A stretch of DNA of 64,000 nucleotides. Source: Hyphochytrium catenoides (lineage: Eukaryota > Protista > Hyphochytriomycota). The notes beneath the pieces were generated by a model that was given only the letters and a program-made list of their open reading frames with translations, was not told the origin of the DNA and did no database searches. Where the stretch lies: NCBI GenBank assembly GCA_900088475.1, contig FLMG01001299.1:83335-147334 (forward strand). The letters are read 5' to 3'. Shown piece by piece: positions 5,031 through 60,169 of the stretch (position 1 is its first letter; every line of letters starts with the position of its first letter). Made by a program: the position numbers and the translations under genes.

Positions 5031-7940
5031 CTATGGGAGCGGTGTTGTGATTTGCCCTTTCCAGAGATCGGCGCGTTGTGTGCCCTTCATAGTTTTCTCT
5101 CATCACTTTTTTTGCTGTCATTTAGGCGAACAACACGGTAGTAGGGCAAAGCTGCAGCGGAGTACAGTCGACAAGGCCGTTAGTCGGTTGGCTTGGAAGG
5201 GTAAACTTCTCACTTCTCCTATCGCGATCCTTTTTTTGTTTGCCTTCGTCCCGCTGCTGCTGGACAGCTTGTCCTCGAGCTCCTGCTTCGCCCGGATAAT
5301 TACAGAAGAGTGCTTGCTGGTGTCTTAGGAGAACAAGAGGTTCCGCGCTGATGTTATAAATAGCATATGAGACCCAATGAGGCTTGCTGCAGTCGTTGAC
5401 CACCATCGCGGGTCGTCACCAGCGGCCCGTAATAATAATTGAGTGACGCTTTCCTTTGGTAGGGCCATCACGGCGGGTGCCGAGCTACTTAGTTGCTGGT
5501 TGGTTGGTCGACGAGAGGAAGAGGAAGAGGACTCAATACCTCGATCTATTAGTCTCTAAAGCTCGCCACACTGAGTGTGCACTCACTTCCATCACAGCCG
5601 ATATCCAGCTCTACGCAACAGACAACTTGACGGACTGATCGTCCCTATACTCGGTCCGTTCCTTTTTTCATGGTCAGACGATCCAATAACACGTTTACCA
5701 CCGCGCCATCTGCTCACTGCGTACACTTTTCAGCATAGAAGCTTCTTACTTCTCCGGGGCCAGCCCGTTAGAAGTTTCCTTTCATTTCTCCATTGATGAG
5801 AGTGCCAGTTCCTCTCTTACTATGGACAAGGACCTTCCTGCTATGGCTAGCAACCCTGTTCTCACTCCCACACATCCACAGTTTGTCAAGCAATAATCGG
5901 GCATTGGCAAAACGAAGGAACATGTATGTTCGCCTCACTCCTTCTGACTACCACCGGTCTCAGACGTCACCCATCAATCCGCCAACTAGGGAGAGAAAGA
6001 TCCGGAGACTCAATTTAGCCACCGTTTCATGCCCCTGCTCCCTCTCGGAAGCTATATTTCTCTCTTTTTAGCGGCTTCTGACTCCTTTGTAGACAGTTCT
6101 TTGCCATCTTTATCCATCGTTTATCTTCATATGGCATCAGGTGCCCAGTTGACAAGAAGGCACGAGATACCAGAAGCTGACAGATTCCTACCAACCTTCC
6201 GTGCACCTTGACATCGCGTCACATTATAGTGCGTTACTTCTTGAGCTCCTCTTCTGAAGTACTAGTGAGACGAGTCGCAGGGGAAAAAAGCTCAGTACAA
6301 GCCAACGCATGGCAGTTCAAAGCTTTTCGCCGATCATGGTTTACTAATGACTGTGTCAGTAATGAAGTTAGAGATGGCACCATGAGCTCGATGGAGGGCG
6401 ACGGCGTGCCGTACGGGGTGGTGGTGCTGCCATCAACCCTCTTCTCGGCCCGCAGTATCCTGCATGCACCCGGACTTTTTGCAGTCTAATATTGATTAAA
6501 GTTCATCTTCTGACGAAGCTACTCTAGAATAGAGACGCTACTGCGCTATTCTTTCATTGGGTAGTGACATAGAAGGCCGTGCCTACCCTAAAGCGAAAGA
6601 TCTATCGTCAATGCTCTTGTCTCTAATCTCTTTTATAAATGTTCCAAGCTAAAGCGTTCCATGCCGTGCAGTGCGCTGAGCCATCAGTGTTAGTACTTGT
6701 GCTTCGCGCTCGGTGGCTGATGTACCACCCGTTAGTTAAAACCTCTAATCTCCACAAGGCATTGCAACTATCCTCGGCTTCGTCCTTAAAGCCTACTCCT
6801 GCACGTCTGCGGACATCGCGTGGTGCTAAAAGCTCGCCAGCTAGCTTACTGGATGAAATTTTGCTTGTCCCTGATCGTATCCGCTGCGAGAACTATTCTA
6901 CCACCGCCATCATAACGTGAACCTAACACATGGTCCTTTGTGTGACAGGCTTACGCTGTATTCTCACGAAAGAGGTATGGCAATCATTAGACTTGCTCAT
7001 AATGTGCTTCTTGAGTTTGACTCACGGCACGGTCGAGCCGCAGACTCCAAGCAAGCAGTATTCATTTTAGCATCTTTCGAGGGTGGCAGGGACTTCAAAT
7101 CACTTCCGTGGGCATCAGACCTTTCAGACTGTTGAAGCTTTATTATACACGACGGAAGACAAAGGTCAGCCCCCTTACCATCGCTTTCCAACACCAGACC
7201 TGATAAACAAGCAAACCGTAGAGTTCTCTTACCCAAACCACCAGCAGCAGCACTGGCAACAGCAGCAGTGGCACAGCGGGCAACAGCACCAAGAGCAGCT
7301 CAACACAAAGAAGGGAAGTCAATGGCGTGCCTGCTGACATTCATCCTGCGTCAGAGAAGACAGCAACGAAGGCTCCCCGCCAAATGAAGCCGGCATAACG
7401 GCCATAAACCGCCTCTTCTGAGGTGTGCAAACACTCACTAACAGCGGCGACGCACACGCTGTAAATGCCGTACAGGTACTGATGTCGCAGGTGAGAAGCT
7501 CGTCTGTCTATGAAAAGCTTCCCGCGCTTTTTCTTCCCTACAAAGGAAGTTGGCGCCAGAAACTTCCGTCATCATCTGTCAATGAACTCTCCTTAGGAGG
7601 ATGTCAGAGCTCATTTGAAGGTTGGACCGCCTCCGTCTTCCTGAATCATTGAGATAACGCTGTCGTACTAGTATAACTTGCTTCTTGGCCACATGCTTTG
7701 TCTCGGAGTTCAATCTGAGGAATTGTCATCGTCGGCTTCGTTGAACTCTCCTTCCTCCGTTTTTGTCCAAGGCCTTTAACATGGAAAGATGAAGCATGAC
7801 CGAGGCAGGAGCCCTTGGACGAGCAGAGAACTACTTCATGTTCCGCCTATTAGGGCCCAATATGTGAAAGGAGGCTCGCTGCAGCTGAACCAAGCCACCT
7901 TTATCCTGTTGCGTAGACGAGGTTGACATCTTTGAAAAGG

Positions 7941-10445
7941 ATGGAGTTACAAGGTGCCTTCGAGCTTGAGGGCTTCTTGGATGACATGGGAGTTGGACTT
8001 GCTTCGCCACCTCGAGAGGTGGCGAATTCCTTACCCCAGTCGCTAAGAACGGGACTGCAAACGGTGTCAGAACTTGGAGTGCCTGTCACTGAGTCGTCCG
8101 TTACGATTAGAGCTTATAAGCGGCCTCTCAGTGGTCTATCTACAGAGCGCAGCTTTCAACACGAGCGAGAGGCCACTGAAGAAAATGACCATTTAGATTT
8201 CAAGACACATCTTCTTCTTAAAATTTCCTATCCGAAGAGGTACAGCTGCTTAGGCACTATCCTCTATGGAAAGCAGTTAGAGGATATAAAAGGTAAGAGA
8301 GTCAACTTCAAGGCGGTCCGGCCGGTTCTGATTATCTCCTCAGTGTCGCTGCTGAGAACTATCGACGAAGGAGTCAATGAGGCCTTTCTCGTGCTCGGTC
8401 CTCCTGGGTCTGGCAAGAAAACTATTTTGACTCAAGTACTCGACTCCATCCGCGAAGGGGAGAGGAAAGCCGGGCCAAAGATCAAGTTCTCCGTTGTCAC
8501 ATTGAACGGATTGTGGCATTCCACCAGTGATGATGCAGTGGCTGAGATCATTTTGCAGTTGTCCGCCGTACCGGATGGTTCCAAGAGGGTAATGAACCTT
8601 AACACTGACCTGAAAACCTTAACCCACCCCGGCACACCTCTTTCATGTTGGTCTCTCCTTATTTGGCTATCCTATGCTATGAAGAGTAACATCATGTCAT
8701 GCTGCCTTAGGTGGTGCCTCCATCCATAGACCGCCTGGGCCTTCTCATGGACATCTTGGAGTCCAAGAAAGCAGCGAAAAAGAGTCTTGTCGTTGTCCTA
8801 GAAAATTTTGAGCACTTTGCGAAGCAGCGGCAGGCCACTCTGTACAAGCTTCTCGACATGCTGCAGGTCGGGCCCTCACCCTCCTAATTTCGCGGGCAGC
8901 ATACTGCTTGCTGAGCGTGAAACTCCTGGAACAGGAATCAACAATAGCGGTGGCAGTCGTCGGTCTAACTTCGGATATTGCAGCGGTGGAGAACCTAGAA
9001 AAACGGATAAGATCTAGGTAAAGGCGCACATACGATCCACTCTTTACCATATGGGAAGGTCCAATGTGTCCAAACGCTCTGACTTAATGACCTTGACTAC
9101 CTTGACTGAAGGATTGCGTGGCTTATACTTTGTCATGCAGGTTTTCATCGCGGATAAGCCTCATCCCCTCTTCAGCTACGTTAGAGGACTATTTATCGGT
9201 GGGCACATGAAATTTTTTGGCTCCGGACGCTTATAGCTCAAACCCTGGATCGTGCTTGCGATTCTTTTGTAGGTGGTCCGTGGTTACCTGTTAATCTCGG
9301 ACAAGCTTATTCGGAGGCGCTGTCCATACCGGCTCTCCCGATATAACAGCTTGGTCGGGACGCTCATAGCCAGTAAACCGTTTCAGAGCTGGTTGGAGAG
9401 TCATTTGGTGCATTCGGGACTCACTGTTAGCTGGCTCATGAGAGTTCTCTACTTAGTTGCGTCAGGCCTGCGAATGGTTGACGGTAAGAGTAAAGCGCTT
9501 TCAGCCACAGAGCCCAGTTTGTCTCCTATGATGATGTCATGTTTAGGCACCTAGTTCTAAAGCAGCGGCGTTTCATCATTTCCAGGTTATTCTGCCCTAG
9601 ACCTTGCCGACTTTGAACGGTCCGCCCAGTTTGCAGGCCTCCCTTCTCGAACGACAGTTTTAAAGAACATCCTGAAAGGTGGGCATCCTGACTTCAGTCT
9701 AGTGTTACTGGTCATGTTTCGAAAACGTTTGTCTCACAAATCGTCTGTCAAACATCTTCACATGACGATCAGACCCATCTCGCTTGCGCTCTACCTTACG
9801 AGTCGCCTAACCTTTGCATTCTAGACCTCGCGGTGATTGAAATCGCACTTCTTCTGGCGCTGAGGCAACTCCATATCAAGCAGGAAATGTCGCCAGAGAC
9901 TCTGCCACACTGCACTTTTGAAATGATCTACCGCGAATATGTCCAACAGAGCACGATGTCCAATACTCATCCCTCTCTATACAGCAGAAGAGTGTGTCTC
10001 AAGGTAGGTCTGACGCTCCTCTTCTGTCTGTACATTCCTGCTCATTTAGACCATCTACTTCCATACTCCCTTCCCTGTGAGATGCCCTTTGCTTGCTATT
10101 TGTGGCTCCCACGCGTATGGGCTCCGCCTTGTTGAGAGTTCAGTTGTAAGCCTTAGAGCTTCTTTCTCTTGCCTAGCCTTCCTTCTTAGCCTCAGACAGT
10201 GGTCGACTCACTTTTCCCTTCGAAAGGCCTTCCAGAATCTTCTGGACCTGAACCTTGTGGAGTTCACCGATTTAGGGGAGCGAGGAAAGTCTCTATGCTT
10301 TGCCTTCGAAAGAAGAGGCGAGCATCGACTGCTTGGCCATCAGAAAGTCAACATAACCGTACCCCCTACTCTCCTGTTATCCATGATAGAAAGTGGAGAA
10401 ATCTTCTGCCCGCTGGAGATTAGAGTCTGGGGCTTAAAGGGCTAG
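7941..10445 (+). CDS. ORC4: Origin recognition complex subunit 4 (AAA+ plus winged helix), multi-exon; 5' end uncertain (possible upstream exon ~7789)
   Basis: LVLGPPGSGKK (Walker A region), VVTLNGLWHSTSDDAVAEIILQL, VVVLENFEHFAKQRQATLYKLLD, VENLEKRIRSR|FSSR (arginine-finger motif), and C-terminal EIALLLALRQL...TFEMIYREY...LKAFQNLLDLNLV. All match the ORC4 pattern. Confidence 0.85.
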
Positions 10446-49839: not shown

Positions 49840-54654
<4,815 letters not shown>

Positions 54655-55253: not shown

Positions 55254-58061
55254 TTAAGCGCATTTGGAAGAGACAGAGTCCACCTTGCATCCGACGACTT
55301 CCAGTCCAGCGAATGGTTGCAGACGAGCTAAACTCTCATGTTGTCTCTTCTTGTCCAAAATATCATCTCTTCTCTTCGCTCCCTCTTCCAATTTATGCTG
55401 ACTTTGCTGCAGCATGGCCAGGGTTTTCGCTTCGTTCAGTTCCTTTTGGGCATCAGCTACAGCCTTCGCATGCTGCCCTTTCTCCGCCGCTTCTCTTTGC
55501 ACCGCATCAATGCTCTGTCTCCTCCTGTCAGAAGCGGATCGAACGTGATTGTTCAGCATCTGTGACTTTAGACTTGCATGCGCCGCCTCCTCCGCCCGCT
55601 GAGTGAGTTTGATTAGCTCAAGACGCTGCTCAAACGCACGAGCAGTCTCTCCTTTTTGGCGGAGAAGAGCATCCTTTCTGCTCTTTGCCCTATGGAGCTT
55701 GAACTCCTGGCGCAGAGACTGTAGACGAGTCTGCGTCTCTTTAATTGATTGCCTTTCCTGAACGCGAAGCTCTCGTTCTCCAATGCGAAACTTCCTTTCT
55801 TCCTCCTTCAGCGATCGGCGAATGGCCGCCAGTTCTTGGGTCTTCTGCATGGTATTATTATCCAGCTCTCTCTTCTTCGCCAAGTGCTGCCTGGTGGCTT
55901 CACATCTGTCAAGCACCAAGCGTGCAGCGTGGATTTTCTGCTCTTCTGCTGAAGCTCGACGAAGGGCAGCCAACTGTTGCTCCAGCTCCAAGGTCTCCTT
56001 GGCAGCCTCCTTTCTGTCTTCGTTGTATTTGCGCACCTGAGAGACCCTTTCTAGGTCCTCCTGGACTGTCGCTAGCTTCGAAAAGAGGACGTTGAGGTAC
56101 CGCTTGTCCCTCCTTTCCATCTTTTCATGGAAAGTCGCGTCATAGTGCAGTGCTTTCATGGCTGTTATCTCCTCTCTTCTCTCAGCAGCTTGCTTCTGCT
56201 TCTGCTCTAACTTCGCAACAGCCAATGCTTGCTCCTTCGCGAGCTCCTGAGCTCTCTTCTCTTCCTTCTTCAGCTTCTCAGCGAGGGCGGCTGTCTCTTT
56301 CTCCTTCTTGCTTGCGACATTCTCACGTACTTTTCGGAAGCATTCCTCATTCCTCTGGGAGAATCCAGGGCTCTGCAGCCTCTGTTCTCTGCGAACGACG
56401 GCACTCCCCTGTCTGTCCTCGATGACCTTTAGCGCTTGCTCCGCTTGCTCTTTAGAAGCTTGTTCAAAGTCATTGTGGAGCTTCTTGGCCTTGTAAACCT
56501 GAGCAGCGGCTGCGCTTCTCCTTCTATGGAGGAACAGAGCGTGGCGCTGGCAGGCAGCCTCTAGCCTCTGCTTCAGGCGCTGCCTTGCTTCTCTCTGCTT
56601 CTCTTTCTCACTTAGGACCTTCCGAGAAGCCTTCTCCATTTCACGCTGCTTCTCCAAGGCAAACTTTGCCGCGAGGGCCTCCTCTCTTCTCATCTCAGCT
56701 GCCCTTAGCCTGCTGTTAAGGTTTCTCTCCAGCGTCTCCTTGTTAGCCATGAGATACTGATGCATAGAGAGCACATTCTTCCTCTTGAGCTCTGCCTCCT
56801 TCAATCGGTTGAGCAGTGACTCTTTAGCCAACTCTCTGCGCATCTCTGCAGTAGCTTGCCGGGAGTTAGCCTTCAAAGCTTGGTTAAGCCATCCCGCGTC
56901 ATTGAGTCGGTGTGCGCAGTAAGTCTTGAAGGTGGCATTAAGCGCAGACTGACGGGCTTTGCTAGCTTTCTCCTCCAGGATAAGCGCTCTTCTGAAGCCG
57001 GCAGCCTCAAGCTTGTACTTCAAGATCTCAGCTTGCTGTTTAGCCAAGTTCTTGCTGCTTTCTTTCACTGCTTCAACGTATTGAAGGGTACGGGAGGCTT
57101 GCTCCGCTCTGTCCTTCAACAGAGAAGATCTCCTCTCGTCTGCAGCCACCAAACGCTGGAGTACAGCCTGCTTGGCTTCTTCGGCTTTCTTCAGCAGAGC
57201 GTCTTCCATTTCTTCTCCTATCTCCTTCGCCGCGAGGACAGTCTCAGAGGCCCCTGCCGCTCTCGTCTTAAGAAATGCCCTGCGACGGTTCTCGGCTTCT
57301 TTGAGTCGGTTCTGGATGGAAAGAAAGGGAGACTCTACCCCGTGCTCATTCTCCTTCTTTGTTATCTTCATCGGCGAGGGAGAAGGAGTGCTACCGCGAA
57401 GAAGACGTGCCTTCTCCTGCTTCTCTCCAAGGAGATTCTGCCTCCTTTGCTCTGCCTCTACCAGCTTGCTCTCAGACTTTGACAGAAGCTGCTTCTTCGA
57501 GGTAAGAGCGACATCTGAGGAGACCGAGGAGATATGCTTGGCGGCATGTAGTTTATCAGATAGCTTCTTCTTGAGCTCATCCAACATTGTCTTTCTCCGC
57601 CAGTCAGCCGCCTCGAGGCGGACGTCAAAGCTCTTTGAAGGAGGGGGCGTCCTTGCCTCAAGAGAGGAAGCGAGGCGCCGAGGGATGAGTTGGCTGAGAG
57701 GTTTGGCCCACTTCTCTGCCGCCGCAGCTGTCTCTTCTTCTCCCTTTATAGGGATTATCCACCCAGGGGAAGCCGAGGAAGGAGCAGGTGATGACAAGGA
57801 GAGAGCGGGCTTTTCTTCTCTTTCCTCCGCTTCCAAGACCGCCTTCTCCTCTCGTAGGTCCGTCTGCAAGGCTTCCGCACTTTCTCTCTCCTCATCCTGA
57901 TTGCTCGACTCCTCCTCAGGAGACGGATGGGCCTCAGGCTGCCGATTGGCATCGACCTTCCATGGCAAAGGCACGTCGTCTCCCTTTACCTTCTCAACTG
58001 TCTCAGGATCCTGATGGTTCTCCGCTGGTGGCGAAGCTTCTTTTTTTAGCCACCGGAACAT
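55254..58061 (-). CDS. Intronless 935-aa alpha-helical repeat protein with ~15 stathmin-like [KR]LxxAxxRR repeats
   Basis: Long open frame rich in E/K/R/A. The motif recurs at 47-53-aa spacing, six times exactly 51. Acidic/Pro-rich N-terminus. Confidence 0.85.
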   Translation of the reverse strand: MFRWLKKEASPPAENHQDPETVEKVKGDDVPLPWKVDANRQPEAHPSPEEESSNQDEERESAEALQTDLREEKAVLEAEEREEKPALSLSSPAPSSASPGWIIPIKGEEETAAAAEKWAKPLSQLIPRRLASSLEARTPPPSKSFDVRLEAADWRRKTMLDELKKKLSDKLHAAKHISSVSSDVALTSKKQLLSKSESKLVEAEQRRQNLLGEKQEKARLLRGSTPSPSPMKITKKENEHGVESPFLSIQNRLKEAENRRRAFLKTRAAGASETVLAAKEIGEEMEDALLKKAEEAKQAVLQRLVAADERRSSLLKDRAEQASRTLQYVEAVKESSKNLAKQQAEILKYKLEAAGFRRALILEEKASKARQSALNATFKTYCAHRLNDAGWLNQALKANSRQATAEMRRELAKESLLNRLKEAELKRKNVLSMHQYLMANKETLERNLNSRLRAAEMRREEALAAKFALEKQREMEKASRKVLSEKEKQREARQRLKQRLEAACQRHALFLHRRRSAAAAQVYKAKKLHNDFEQASKEQAEQALKVIEDRQGSAVVRREQRLQSPGFSQRNEECFRKVRENVASKKEKETAALAEKLKKEEKRAQELAKEQALAVAKLEQKQKQAAERREEITAMKALHYDATFHEKMERRDKRYLNVLFSKLATVQEDLERVSQVRKYNEDRKEAAKETLELEQQLAALRRASAEEQKIHAARLVLDRCEATRQHLAKKRELDNNTMQKTQELAAIRRSLKEEERKFRIGERELRVQERQSIKETQTRLQSLRQEFKLHRAKSRKDALLRQKGETARAFEQRLELIKLTQRAEEAAHASLKSQMLNNHVRSASDRRRQSIDAVQREAAEKGQHAKAVADAQKELNEAKTLAMLQQSQHKLEEGAKRRDDILDKKRQHESLARLQPFAGLEVVGCKVDSVSSKCA

Positions 58062-58401
58062 GTCTACTGACTGGTGTCCGGACGAGAGCTAACAGCAATC
58101 TTTATGAACCATTCACAGTCCAGTCAGAATCTAACGATCTTTGAGCAGTTCGCTCTTCTTGCTCCTGGTATTCAGAGTTACACGCTGTCGATGATAAGGC
58201 TCTTCGCAGATGTCGTCTGCGTTTCTCGGCTTTTGAGCGCTTGCTCGAGCTTCACGCCTTCTGCCTGAACTCTTTGGCTTCTCTTCGCCGACGAAGCCCG
58301 TCGCTGGCGCCCTTGATCTTTGTCATTTGTTCTCTTTTTCTCCCTCTTTCTTCTCTTCTCTCTCTTGTTCTCTGTCNNNNNNNNNNNNNNNNNNNNNNNN
58401 N

Positions 58402-58440
<39 letters not shown>
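58402..58440 (+). repeat. (TC)n microsatellite abutting assembly gap 58377-58401
   Basis: Visible dinucleotide run after Ns. Confidence 0.95.
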
Positions 58441-58444
<4 letters not shown>

Positions 58445-60169
58445 GACGCTTCTGTACAGGCGGGACAGGGACGGGCTGGGCGCTCGTCCAATGGCGTCCT
58501 TTCACAGAGAAGAGACAAAGTCTAACATCACAAACTCCGTAATCTGCTTCCCATACTCAAACATTAAGAAAGCCATTTACCTAAATAATGGAAAGCGCAT
58601 ATCGCGGAGTCTGGAAATGTAACGCTTAGAAATACTGACCAGCAGATCCTCCTTATTGCTAATATCGCCGGTCCGATCCTGGATGTGAGCGCTTATCAAA
58701 GGTCACAAGATGGAGAGAAGGAGGAGAAGGGAAACAGATTGAGAGACAGAGACAGAGATGGAAGACAAAAAGACTGGAGAAGAGAGAGAAGAGACAAGAG
58801 AGAGAAAGACACGATTGAAAGCCAGAGACATAGAAAGACGAAGCCTTGCGAAGAAGAGACAGAGAAAGAGCAAAGACCTGAAGAAGAGAGCTCAAGAGAG
58901 CGGAAGAGCCAGAGCAGCAGAGAGATGGACAGAGAGACCAGAAAGAACAGTCATCAGGTCCCCTTCCCTGATCAGCGGGCACACAATCAAACAGATGGGA
59001 CGAAGATAGAGAAGGCCATCAAAGAGGGGAGAAACGTCAGGAGGAACGCTGATTGAGAGGAAGGGAGAAGTGAGAGAGAGAGAGTCCGTGCACAATCCTC
59101 CGAGAGATCTTTCTCTGCTGGCTTGATGATAGTGCACGGACAAGTTTACTATTTCTCAACGGCCTACGGCACGCCACACAGGAAGAAGGAGAAGACACGT
59201 CTGCCATCTGAGGAGAGAGAGCGGCGAAGAACTTGAGAACAAAGGCAAGACTATCACAGCAACAGAAAGAAGAGGGAAAGGGAAGAAGAGAGCACTGGAA
59301 ACAAGGTAAGAAACAGAACAACTCTTGCCTTGAAAAGGCGAACAAATCACTTGCAAGCCGGACCTGCGACATTTAGAGAGAGCACGAAGGAAGCCTGCCG
59401 CTTTATCGGCATCCGGCGAGATAGGGAGCGCGAAGTTAGCCTGCGAGGCTTCCTCACCTGGTGAATCCGCGACAACGGGGACCAGCAGGATGACTGTGGA
59501 CCAGAAGATGAGAGTTCTTTCGTTGGGAGAGTGGGCAAAGAATACTCTTAGGATCACTTTGCCCTTGAAGATCATGGTCAAGAGAAAAGATCAAAGAGTC
59601 AATTCTATGAGCAAATAGCGTCTGAGAATCTCTGATGTGGCCCAGTTTTGGCGGTGCCTAACACTATTACTAAGCAGAGAGCTAGTGATCTGACCCGCGA
59701 TTGTAGTTCTTCTCTTTGAGCTTCCGCTCCGTTCTCTTATGTAACGAGACAAGATAGCTCTGCCCAAAGAGTCCTTCTTGACTACTTGGCTTGTATAAGC
59801 CCCTAGGCCCTTAGCAGGCCTTTTCCTTTGCGATACCGTGGCATGGCTTTGCCTCGTGAGACGAATTTGGTGCTGGTGCTGTGAGAAGCTCAGCTCTGGT
59901 TGTACTTGTGGGGCTTGTTGATAACTTGGAGGGGCTACTCTGTCCATCCCTCTTGACGTAAGAGCATACATAAACAGCTACTCCTAATTCTAGACCTCTT
60001 TCCCGTAGGCTCCCGTCTGATTGTCTTTCTCTCTCCGCTACTCTGTTGCCAGCTATGTGGAGCTTGACCTAACGGGATTGACGTATAAAAAGATCGTCTA
60101 TGGTGCCCTCTTGTGGGCTTTAATGTACACTACCAAGGCTGAGTCGGTTAGCCTGAAGTAAGATGAGGG

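Follow-up and report, generated by a model that had tools for sequence, protein, structure and literature searches.

The stretch analysed here, referred to as the window, comprises 64,000 nucleotides of the Hyphochytrium catenoides contig FLMG01001299.1 (assembly GCA_900088475.1, positions 83,335 to 147,334 of the forward strand). At window positions 55254..58061 on the minus strand lies a gene of 935 codons plus stop, in which one open frame encodes an acidic disordered head followed by a basic helical array of stathmin-like repeats. Full-length orthologues were collinear with the window protein in the alignment, from a conserved start (MF-R-L) to a C-terminal LQP[FY]AGL, and the 935-codon frame is therefore regarded as a complete single exon. 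All coordinates given below for parts of this gene are window positions on the minus strand.

The repeat array covers residues 142-935 (55257..57638), has an isoelectric point (pI) of 10.0, and is organised in about 16 slots with a mean period of 49.5 residues and the consensus [RK]-L-x-x-A-x-x-R-R-x-x-x-L-x-x-[RK]-x-x-x-A. It begins with motifs 1 to 6, RLEAADWRR at residue 148 (57594..57620), KLVEAEQRR at 199 (57441..57467), RLKEAENRR at 252 (57282..57308), RLVAADERR at 303 (57129..57155), KLEAAGFRR at 350 (56988..57014), and RQATAEMRR at 401 (56835..56861). Motif 6 is followed after 19 residues by (R)LKEAELKRK at residue 420 (56778..56804), an off-register extra that is kept in the orthologues. 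Motifs 7, 8, and 9 are RLRAAEMRR at 451 (56685..56711), RLEAACQRH at 499 (56541..56567), and RQGSAVVRR at 550 (56388..56414). A further off-register extra, KQKQAAERR, occurs at residue 621 (56175..56201), while the slot KMERRDKRY at residue 647 (56097..56123) is in register and degenerate here, but canonical in orthologues (RQRGAELRR, RLRSAEIRR). The array closes with EQQLAALRR at 694 (55956..55982), TQELAAIRR at 741 (55815..55841), KLHRAKSRK at 788 (55674..55700), HVRSASDRR at 839 (55521..55547), and KLEEGAKRR at 890 (55368..55394).

The original prediction, made from the letters of the window, had described about 15 stathmin-like repeats in a 51-residue register. All 15 of its motifs were present in the 935-residue frame at the listed residues from 148 to 890, and its hand-counted spacings (51, 53, 51, 47, 51, 50, 48, 51, 71, 73, 47, 47, 51, and 51) proved exact. 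While motifs and steps stand as described, the array is rather one of about 16 in-register slots with a mean step of 49.5 and not 51 residues. Within the two long gaps of 71 and 73 residues there are in-register slots that have degenerated, one near residue 598 and one at 647; these are the two degenerate slots of the window protein on the 49.5-residue register.

The repeat is far from what composition alone produces. The pattern A-x-x-R-[RKH] occurred 14 times, compared to 1.95 expected in shuffles (maximum of 8 in 2000), and every occurrence falls within the motif series. BLOSUM self-correlation reached its maximum at a lag of 51 residues (z 4.0), and arginine periodicity in the 774-residue array showed a sharp peak at 49.5 residues (z 8.1). 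When 83 in-register units taken from six orthologues were stacked, the consensus was [RK] at position 0, L at 1, A at 4 (94%), R at 7 (87%), R at 8 (92%), L at 12 (72%), [RK] at 15, and A at 19, and these consensus positions make up a stripe whose period is that of a helix.

An exhaustive HMMER search of 1.84 billion representatives identified 13 relatives at 26-31% identity, of which the full-length ones have 865-972 residues. They originate from Achlya, Aphanomyces, Saprolegnia, Thraustotheca, an MMETSP transcriptome, and environmental eukaryotic scaffolds. All of them are unnamed or annotated as hypothetical proteins, and no member of the family is characterised. No paralogues of the poly-repeat gene were found. 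In the alignment of seven sequences, nearly all invariant columns are A-x-x-R-R stripe positions, and the distances between motifs are the same in all seven or nearly so: 51, 40-53, 51, 47, 51, 19 plus 31 or 32, 48, and 51 residues, followed by 70 or 71, 26, 47, 47, 47, 51, and 51. With identity below 30%, spacing this rigid speaks for joint action of the repeats on a partner that is itself periodic.

Word-indexed searches were uninformative on the range of the family. With the protein as query nothing was returned, and with the family alignment only a TCP11 protein was found while known orthologues were missed, because low-complexity words saturate the index. On one environmental scaffold (L012), the orthologue P0009 (757 residues, 6001-8274) is followed by an open reading frame of 262 residues (P0010, 8344-9132), with repeats in both; these are probably one gene of about 1020 residues split by a frameshift or short intron. 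RING and Thioredoxin-UBA-PUB genes lie upstream of the orthologue on this scaffold and on a second one (L010).

Ahead of the array, residues 1-141 are acidic (pI 4.7) and predicted to be disordered. The head proper (residues 1-95; 57777..58061) is poorly conserved, with a gappy alignment and a predicted local distance difference test (pLDDT) score of about 30. It is followed by a Trp-rich motif (GWIIPIK...KWAKPL, residues 100-122; 57696..57764) about 30 residues before repeat 1, which reads WI[IH]S[WF]DKxxxWP in orthologues and of which W101, I102, W118, and L122 are invariant in the seven sequences. This motif, for which the prediction gave no confident structure, is a candidate cap or targeting element.

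The Pro/Ser-Pro segments of the original prediction were found where it had placed them, with TPPPSKSF directly ahead of repeat 1 and the other two, TPSPSP and ESPFLSIQ, ahead of repeat 3. The first belongs to the Pro-rich Ser/Thr-Pro linker RTPPPSKSF (residues 137-145; 57627..57653), read from the sequence directly before repeat 1. The second and third belong to a helix-breaking Pro/Ser linker (STPSPSP...ESPF, residues 221-247; 57321..57401), the sole segment between motifs that varies by more than one residue in orthologues (40-53 residues), and a candidate phospho-regulated hinge. By analogy with the phospho-serines of stathmin, the Ser/Thr-Pro hinges may be considered candidate regulatory sites. 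Past the last repeat, the C-terminal peptide LQPFAGLEVVG (residues 914-924; 55290..55322) is conserved.

AlphaFold2 with the family alignment predicted helices at residues 144-220, 245-439, 441-561, and 567-905, the longest with 339 residues, and at a predicted template modelling score of 0.21 no bundle was predicted. The heptad a/d occupancy in the best register was 0.413, compared to 0.398 +/- 0.012 in shuffles, and windows reaching an occupancy of 0.625 made up 8%, equal to shuffles. A classical coiled coil was set aside as there is no heptad signal. The self-associating coiled coil that had been named as one outcome speaking against a tubulin scaffold did not appear in the models, which gave very long single helices. 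A Foldseek search of the single-sequence model against the PDB gave no match, as expected of bare long helices.

The likeness to stathmin was assessed with profiles of the repeat. A profile of single repeats (A3), searched against 177,635 distinct PDB chains, had stathmin-like domains (SLDs) as its top two matches (E 0.068 and 0.13). With a profile of two repeats (A5), all 21 matches were stathmin/RB3 chains (best E 0.044), and the alignment placed both repeats of stathmin-4 in motif register. An earlier two-repeat alignment (A4) had been discarded because MAFFT mis-stacked its overlapping units, and A5 was used in its place. After the addition of TCP11 N-terminal units (A6), 22 of 22 matches were stathmins with a best E of 0.003, the engineered R4 included. 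The 51-residue spacing that had been claimed for stathmin was borne out for stathmin-4 in the alignment of the PDB chain, where KLEAAEERR and KMESNKENR start 51 residues apart. Of the 24 families matched when 30 two-repeat units were compared with Pfam, all but Stathmin were hit by a single unit, while Stathmin was hit by 5 (best E 0.0073). A language-model feature search, which serves as a lead only, ranked a partly Stathmin-annotated cluster third (score 0.90). As judged by these sequence comparisons, stathmin is the specific, reciprocal best match of the repeat, at borderline E-values.

A complex with tubulin was then modelled, as had been proposed with the prediction. The alpha- and beta-tubulin genes of the organism are intron-free, and its own alpha-tubulin (1-438) and beta-tubulin (1-428) were combined with window-protein residues 244-345, a 102-residue piece holding repeats 3 and 4. 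The interaction prediction score from aligned errors (ipSAE) was 0.64, 0.65, and 0.64, while the best of three controls scored 0.00; the pass mark is one reached by 51 of 78 solved complexes and by 2 of 108 mismatched pairs. Contacts agreed by at least 96% among runs, and the pLDDT of the partner was at least 77. The two-repeat piece with one alpha/beta dimer therefore passed its controls as a prediction.

The predicted tubulin-contact stretch comprises residues 289-332 (57066..57197; residues 46-89 of the piece) and runs over alpha- and then beta-tubulin. In the model, residue 289 through motif 4 (RLVAADERR) lies on alpha-tubulin 104-112, 152-163, and 410-414, the last being the acidic GEGMEE loop, and the other half of the interface consists of the equivalent beta-tubulin positions 106, 150-161, 194-195, 402, and 404. 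The later residues of the partner are read as touching these beta-tubulin positions, while the listed low-error pairs cover alpha only; if so, the predicted polarity of the chain from alpha to beta would be that of stathmin. When the repeat positions are ranked by conservation, the first seven are without exception predicted contacts, and 12 of the first 14 are (Mann-Whitney p 0.0009). The array is basic, with a pI of 10, and the surface of tubulin is acidic. According to a review (PMC7491153), SLDs and kinesins occupy overlapping sites on the outside of tubulin, and the modelled contact at alpha 410-414 and H11'-H12 is consistent with this outer-face site. The literature searched held nothing usable on the tubulin residues touched by stathmin.

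Taken together, the window gene is best explained as a natural multi-repeat stathmin-like protein in which each unit of about 50 residues would grip one alpha/beta-tubulin dimer, in a row of up to about 16, an explanation in which we place roughly even confidence. The single-helix tubulin scaffold of the original prediction is partly supported. None of the three outcomes that it had named as refuting arose, since the profiles showed a specific likeness to stathmin, the models gave no coiled coil, and the modelled complex passed its controls. Homology, however, is borderline, binding is a prediction, and the suggested roles of sequestering a curved protofilament or acting as a ruler are hypothetical.

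A number of results weigh against this explanation. The whole 935-residue protein matched no Pfam family at E<=10, and a whole-protein phmmer search of the PDB returned nothing useful. Two-repeat pieces scored 10.7-11.4 bits against Pfam Stathmin (PF00836) and the orthologue P0002 scored 16 bits (E 0.012), both under the curated cut-off of 24.7 bits. The anticipated profile similarity to stathmin is specific in its PDB and Pfam matches, but it stays below the Pfam threshold, and homology to stathmin is borderline as judged from profiles. The best stathmin E-values of 0.003-0.07 were obtained with a short, low-complexity helical motif, for which convergence is possible. In the exhaustive HMMER search, the family was confined to a hyphochytrid-like genome, Saprolegniales, and a few environmental eukaryotes. 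No N-terminal beta-hairpin cap like that of stathmin was predicted ahead of repeat 1, where pLDDT is below 50. As for the complex, the model may have passed by reproducing the several hundred tubulin-RB3 complexes already solved, and the pass is taken to indicate likeness and not binding. The test covered one repeat pair with one dimer, a job unlike the calibration set of the tool, and the identity of the predicted binding site with that of stathmin was argued from helix names only.

These points lend themselves to a different explanation, according to which the protein is a convergent look-alike, namely a basic Ala/Arg/Glu-rich helical filament or spacer with a period of about 50 residues for another partner or for self-assembly. 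It could be part of a striated fibre, a flagellar root, or a cortical lattice, with A-x-x-R-R resembling stathmin by composition only. Besides the missed Pfam threshold and the borderline E-values, long charged helices are frequent in cytoskeletal fibre proteins, and local hydrophobic periodicity at 3.4-3.6 and 7 residues was mildly higher than in shuffles (z 2.4-3.4). However, only stathmins were matched among 177,635 PDB sequences that include many charged helices and coiled coils, and heptad a/d occupancy did not differ from shuffles. Neither paralogues nor matches to fibre families in Pfam were found, and the tubulin model passed while its controls stayed at 0.00. We therefore consider convergence unlikely.

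The strongest match outside the family itself was to TCP11 proteins, whose N-terminal helical repeats had been suggested for comparison. The suggestion was well founded, as profile A5 found only two loci genome-wide, the window gene and the N-terminus of a TCP11 gene (E 3.4e-5, 29.6 bits). The latter gene (L003:5030-7720 on the plus strand, equivalent to G000:C3462, about 171029-173719) encodes a Tcp11 domain (PF05794, E 4.6e-65) and opens with a pair of stathmin-like repeats (KLSSAEKSR and KLEEAKFRR) that are separated by about 49 residues. The A5 alignment covered profile positions 4-90 of 102 and spanned both motifs. In the 61-Mb genome, the best match of the Pfam Stathmin model was this TCP11 N-terminus and not the window gene (E 0.021), and as a protein it scored 17.7 bits against the same model (E 0.0038). 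In a search of 5.8 billion sequences, the family alignment A2 matched a TCP11 protein of Chlamydomonas eustigma (P0032, E 7.5e-5), on whose N-terminal repeats A5 scored 26.4 bits compared to noise of at most 5.7 bits. As a single sequence against the PDB, the TCP11 N-terminus gave no stathmin match and only spectrin at E 0.39; the link between TCP11 and stathmin is visible to profiles only. SLD-TCP11 fusions in a red alga (Rhodosorus marinus entries) were mentioned and set aside by Deng et al. 2024 (PMC11238091), and databases annotate TCP11 N-terminal regions as SLDs (PMC11238091). The literature searched held nothing usable on TCP11L1 with microtubules. In terms of sequence similarity, the poly-repeat family, TCP11 N-termini, and stathmins form a chain of which the first link is significant and the second borderline.

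The repeat could accordingly be a TCP11-type module for a non-tubulin partner, such as the Tcp11 domain or a signalling protein, and the window protein a multivalent platform. The match to TCP11 N-termini at 24-30 bits (E 3.4e-5 in the genome and 7.5e-5 in C. eustigma) indeed exceeds that to stathmin at 17-21 bits. Yet the TCP11 N-terminus is itself the best match of the Stathmin model in the genome and such regions carry SLD annotations in databases (PMC11238091), so that the TCP11 link runs towards stathmin and not away from it. Furthermore, no partner of such a module is known, and in the model the tubulin surface accommodates the conserved stripe, which leaves a non-tubulin module rather improbable.

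Under the preferred explanation of a multi-repeat stathmin-like protein, the acidic disordered head would be followed by about 790 residues forming very long helices with about 16 copies of the unit of about 50 residues. The conserved stripe of each unit would lie along one alpha/beta-tubulin dimer, with A-x-x-R-R on helices H3 and H4 and the acidic H11'-H12 loop of alpha-tubulin and the next 25 residues or so on the same face of beta-tubulin, so that the chain from N to C would run from alpha to beta. Given that the spacings have stayed the same to the residue across deeply diverged sequences, the repeats would be expected to cooperate in holding a lengthwise row of at most about 16 dimers, some 120 nm long. 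One dimer per repeat is the presumed stoichiometry, and the bound row might be either a curved sequestered oligomer or a protofilament of a microtubule. Formal membership in the stathmin family is not established; the action would be stathmin-like as far as computation shows.

The straight microtubule lattice has a repeat of 8.2 nm. The period of 47-51 residues, about 7.4 nm as a helix, does not exceed that of stathmin and is too short for an unbroken helix to span this lattice repeat, which would favour curved tubulin. The same is suggested by stathmins binding soluble tubulin and not assembled microtubules (PMC12130871). Both considerations also bear on the idea of a lattice-bound ruler, in which the protein would be a structural microtubule-associated or inner protein on straight protofilaments of the axoneme, rootlets, or spindle, setting length without sequestering tubulin. 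The exact conservation of spacing suggests register with a lattice, the organism and Saprolegniales build flagellated zoospores (PMC5795050), and slack could be absorbed where the helix is interrupted, at 221-247, about 440, and 562-566. Nevertheless, the mean of 49.5 residues, equivalent to about 7.4 nm of helix, would fall short of the straight repeat, and the exhaustive HMMER search brought up no family member from any other flagellated stramenopile. No family of known filamentous inner proteins of microtubules (TPH-domain, RIB43A, and the like) was matched at E<=10 in Pfam by the protein, its pieces, or the orthologues. A ruler on straight protofilaments is thus considered doubtful.

A more specific form of binding to curved tubulin can be envisaged from its geometry. 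Curved tubulin rotates by 9-18 degrees per tubulin subunit (PMC7491153), at which a full turn needs 10-20 dimers, and the protein offers about 16 slots with a period below that of the straight lattice. One molecule might therefore template or store curved tubulin as a closed ring or a shallow spiral and serve as a ring chaperone or tubulin store, although we would give this little credence at present. Release might then occur by phosphorylation at the Ser/Thr-Pro hinges when zoospores build flagella.

Variation within the gene was low compared to its surroundings. In genomic runs from the same organism, the coding sequence differed between haplotypes or strains at 5 of 2808 nt (three synonymous, V>I, and D>E), while the upstream flank differed at about 17 per 600 nt. 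Heterozygosity in the flanks was about 2.8%, and for the published Hyphochytrium catenoides assembly the frequency of single-nucleotide polymorphisms is about 0.0275 (PMC5795050). At window position 58008 (codon 18), contigs of two runs (X2 and X3) had 35 additional letters between two pieces sharing 58008; compared with the window, the disordered head is thereby longer by 36 nt (12 codons), in frame. This is either an allele or an assembly difference. A 1-nt deletion at window position 58038 in run X3 is probably an error, as depth was low. About 300 nt upstream of the start codon, a GA/CT microsatellite (58331-58460) is broken by a run of N, an assembly gap, and many contigs end there.

Coverage of gene and flanks was even in the three organism-labelled runs, which are thus genomic and give no evidence of expression. 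Two 151-nt contigs from a plant-associated metatranscriptome (run X4) were at least 99% identical to the gene at 55500-55650 and 55788-55938, which hints that the organism or a near-identical strain occurs on plants and transcribes the gene, with DNA carry-over as the alternative. Antisense open reading frames of up to 242 residues on the plus strand (55338-57900) were rejected as genes, being a by-product of the stop-poor Ala/Arg/Glu/Leu-rich composition. Conversely, the poly-repeat gene as an antisense artefact was ruled out, as the orthologues confirmed the minus-strand frame. The downstream neighbour on the opposite strand (53218-54654, plus strand) resembles, in its translation, the C-terminal portion of a DEAH-box RNA helicase encoded in several exons, with no apparent functional link to the poly-repeat gene.

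Stathmins are regarded as small two-repeat tubulin sequesterers, essentially of animals and their relatives. To our knowledge, arrays of more than two stathmin repeats exist only as engineered crystallisation scaffolds. The array described here is a natural, stathmin-like one of 16 slots, conserved between a hyphochytrid-like organism and Saprolegniales, which include pathogens of fish, crayfish, and legumes. If the stathmin-like explanation is true, the stathmin repeat would extend to stramenopiles and be tied to the unexplained N-termini of TCP11 proteins. The protein would also be a ready-made reagent for defined tubulin oligomers and provide an easy way of testing how the geometry of a protofilament is encoded in the distance between repeats. 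Should the ring or store be true as well, the stathmin repeat would be an ancient pan-eukaryotic tubulin-binding unit common to TCP11 proteins and not an opisthokont invention. SLD-only proteins are reported from Opisthokonta and two ciliates (Deng et al. 2024, PMC11238091), while the window protein comes from a stramenopile. The literature searched held nothing usable on stathmin in oomycetes.

One of the closest known systems is the stathmin family (STMN1-4/RB3 and STMND1; PF00836). Like the window protein as predicted, its members have a long helix that is not a coiled coil and an internal repeat of about 51 residues, [KR]-[LM]-E-A-[AN]-x-E-x-R. Both have a Ser/Thr-Pro-rich linker ahead of the helix, and the tandem repeats of the K-L-E-A-A-E-E-R-R type in the window protein follow one another, as in stathmin, at comparable steps (47-53 residues, with two longer ones). 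The predicted course along the outer face of alpha- and then beta-tubulin would likewise be shared. The two differ in size, with 935 residues and about 16 repeat slots in the window protein compared to about 150-190 residues and two repeats in stathmin, which forms a 2:1 tubulin complex. They also differ in period (mean of 49.5, range 47-51, compared to 51) and in composition (Arg/Ala-rich compared to Glu/Lys-rich), and the cap hairpin is part of stathmin but not demonstrably present in the window protein. TCP11 proteins have the same type of repeat in register over two repeats, at 24-30 bits. While they combine 2-4 repeats with a subsequent Tcp11 domain (PF05794), the window protein has many more repeats and no Tcp11 domain, in line with its lack of Pfam matches.

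Nebulin, a template of the actin thin filament whose 35-residue repeats are fitted to the 5.5-nm actin subunit, has no sequence relation to the window protein and may be compared by analogy only, as a giant array of short helical repeats with one repeat per polymer subunit, a conserved basic motif, and strict spacing. Another close counterpart is the set of designed SLDs R1-R4, which, as cited in PMC7491153 from Mignot et al. 2012, bind one to four tubulins in a row. As far as those designs are described (PDB 4f6r and 4f61), they are tandem SLD repeats with one tubulin dimer each, and the window protein is likewise tandem; the repeat profiles picked up both R1, one of their best matches in the PDB, and R4. 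While R1-R4 are described as built from RB3, with a cap and repeats that are all alike, the window gene is natural and carries about 16 diverged repeats at fixed, unequal spacing.

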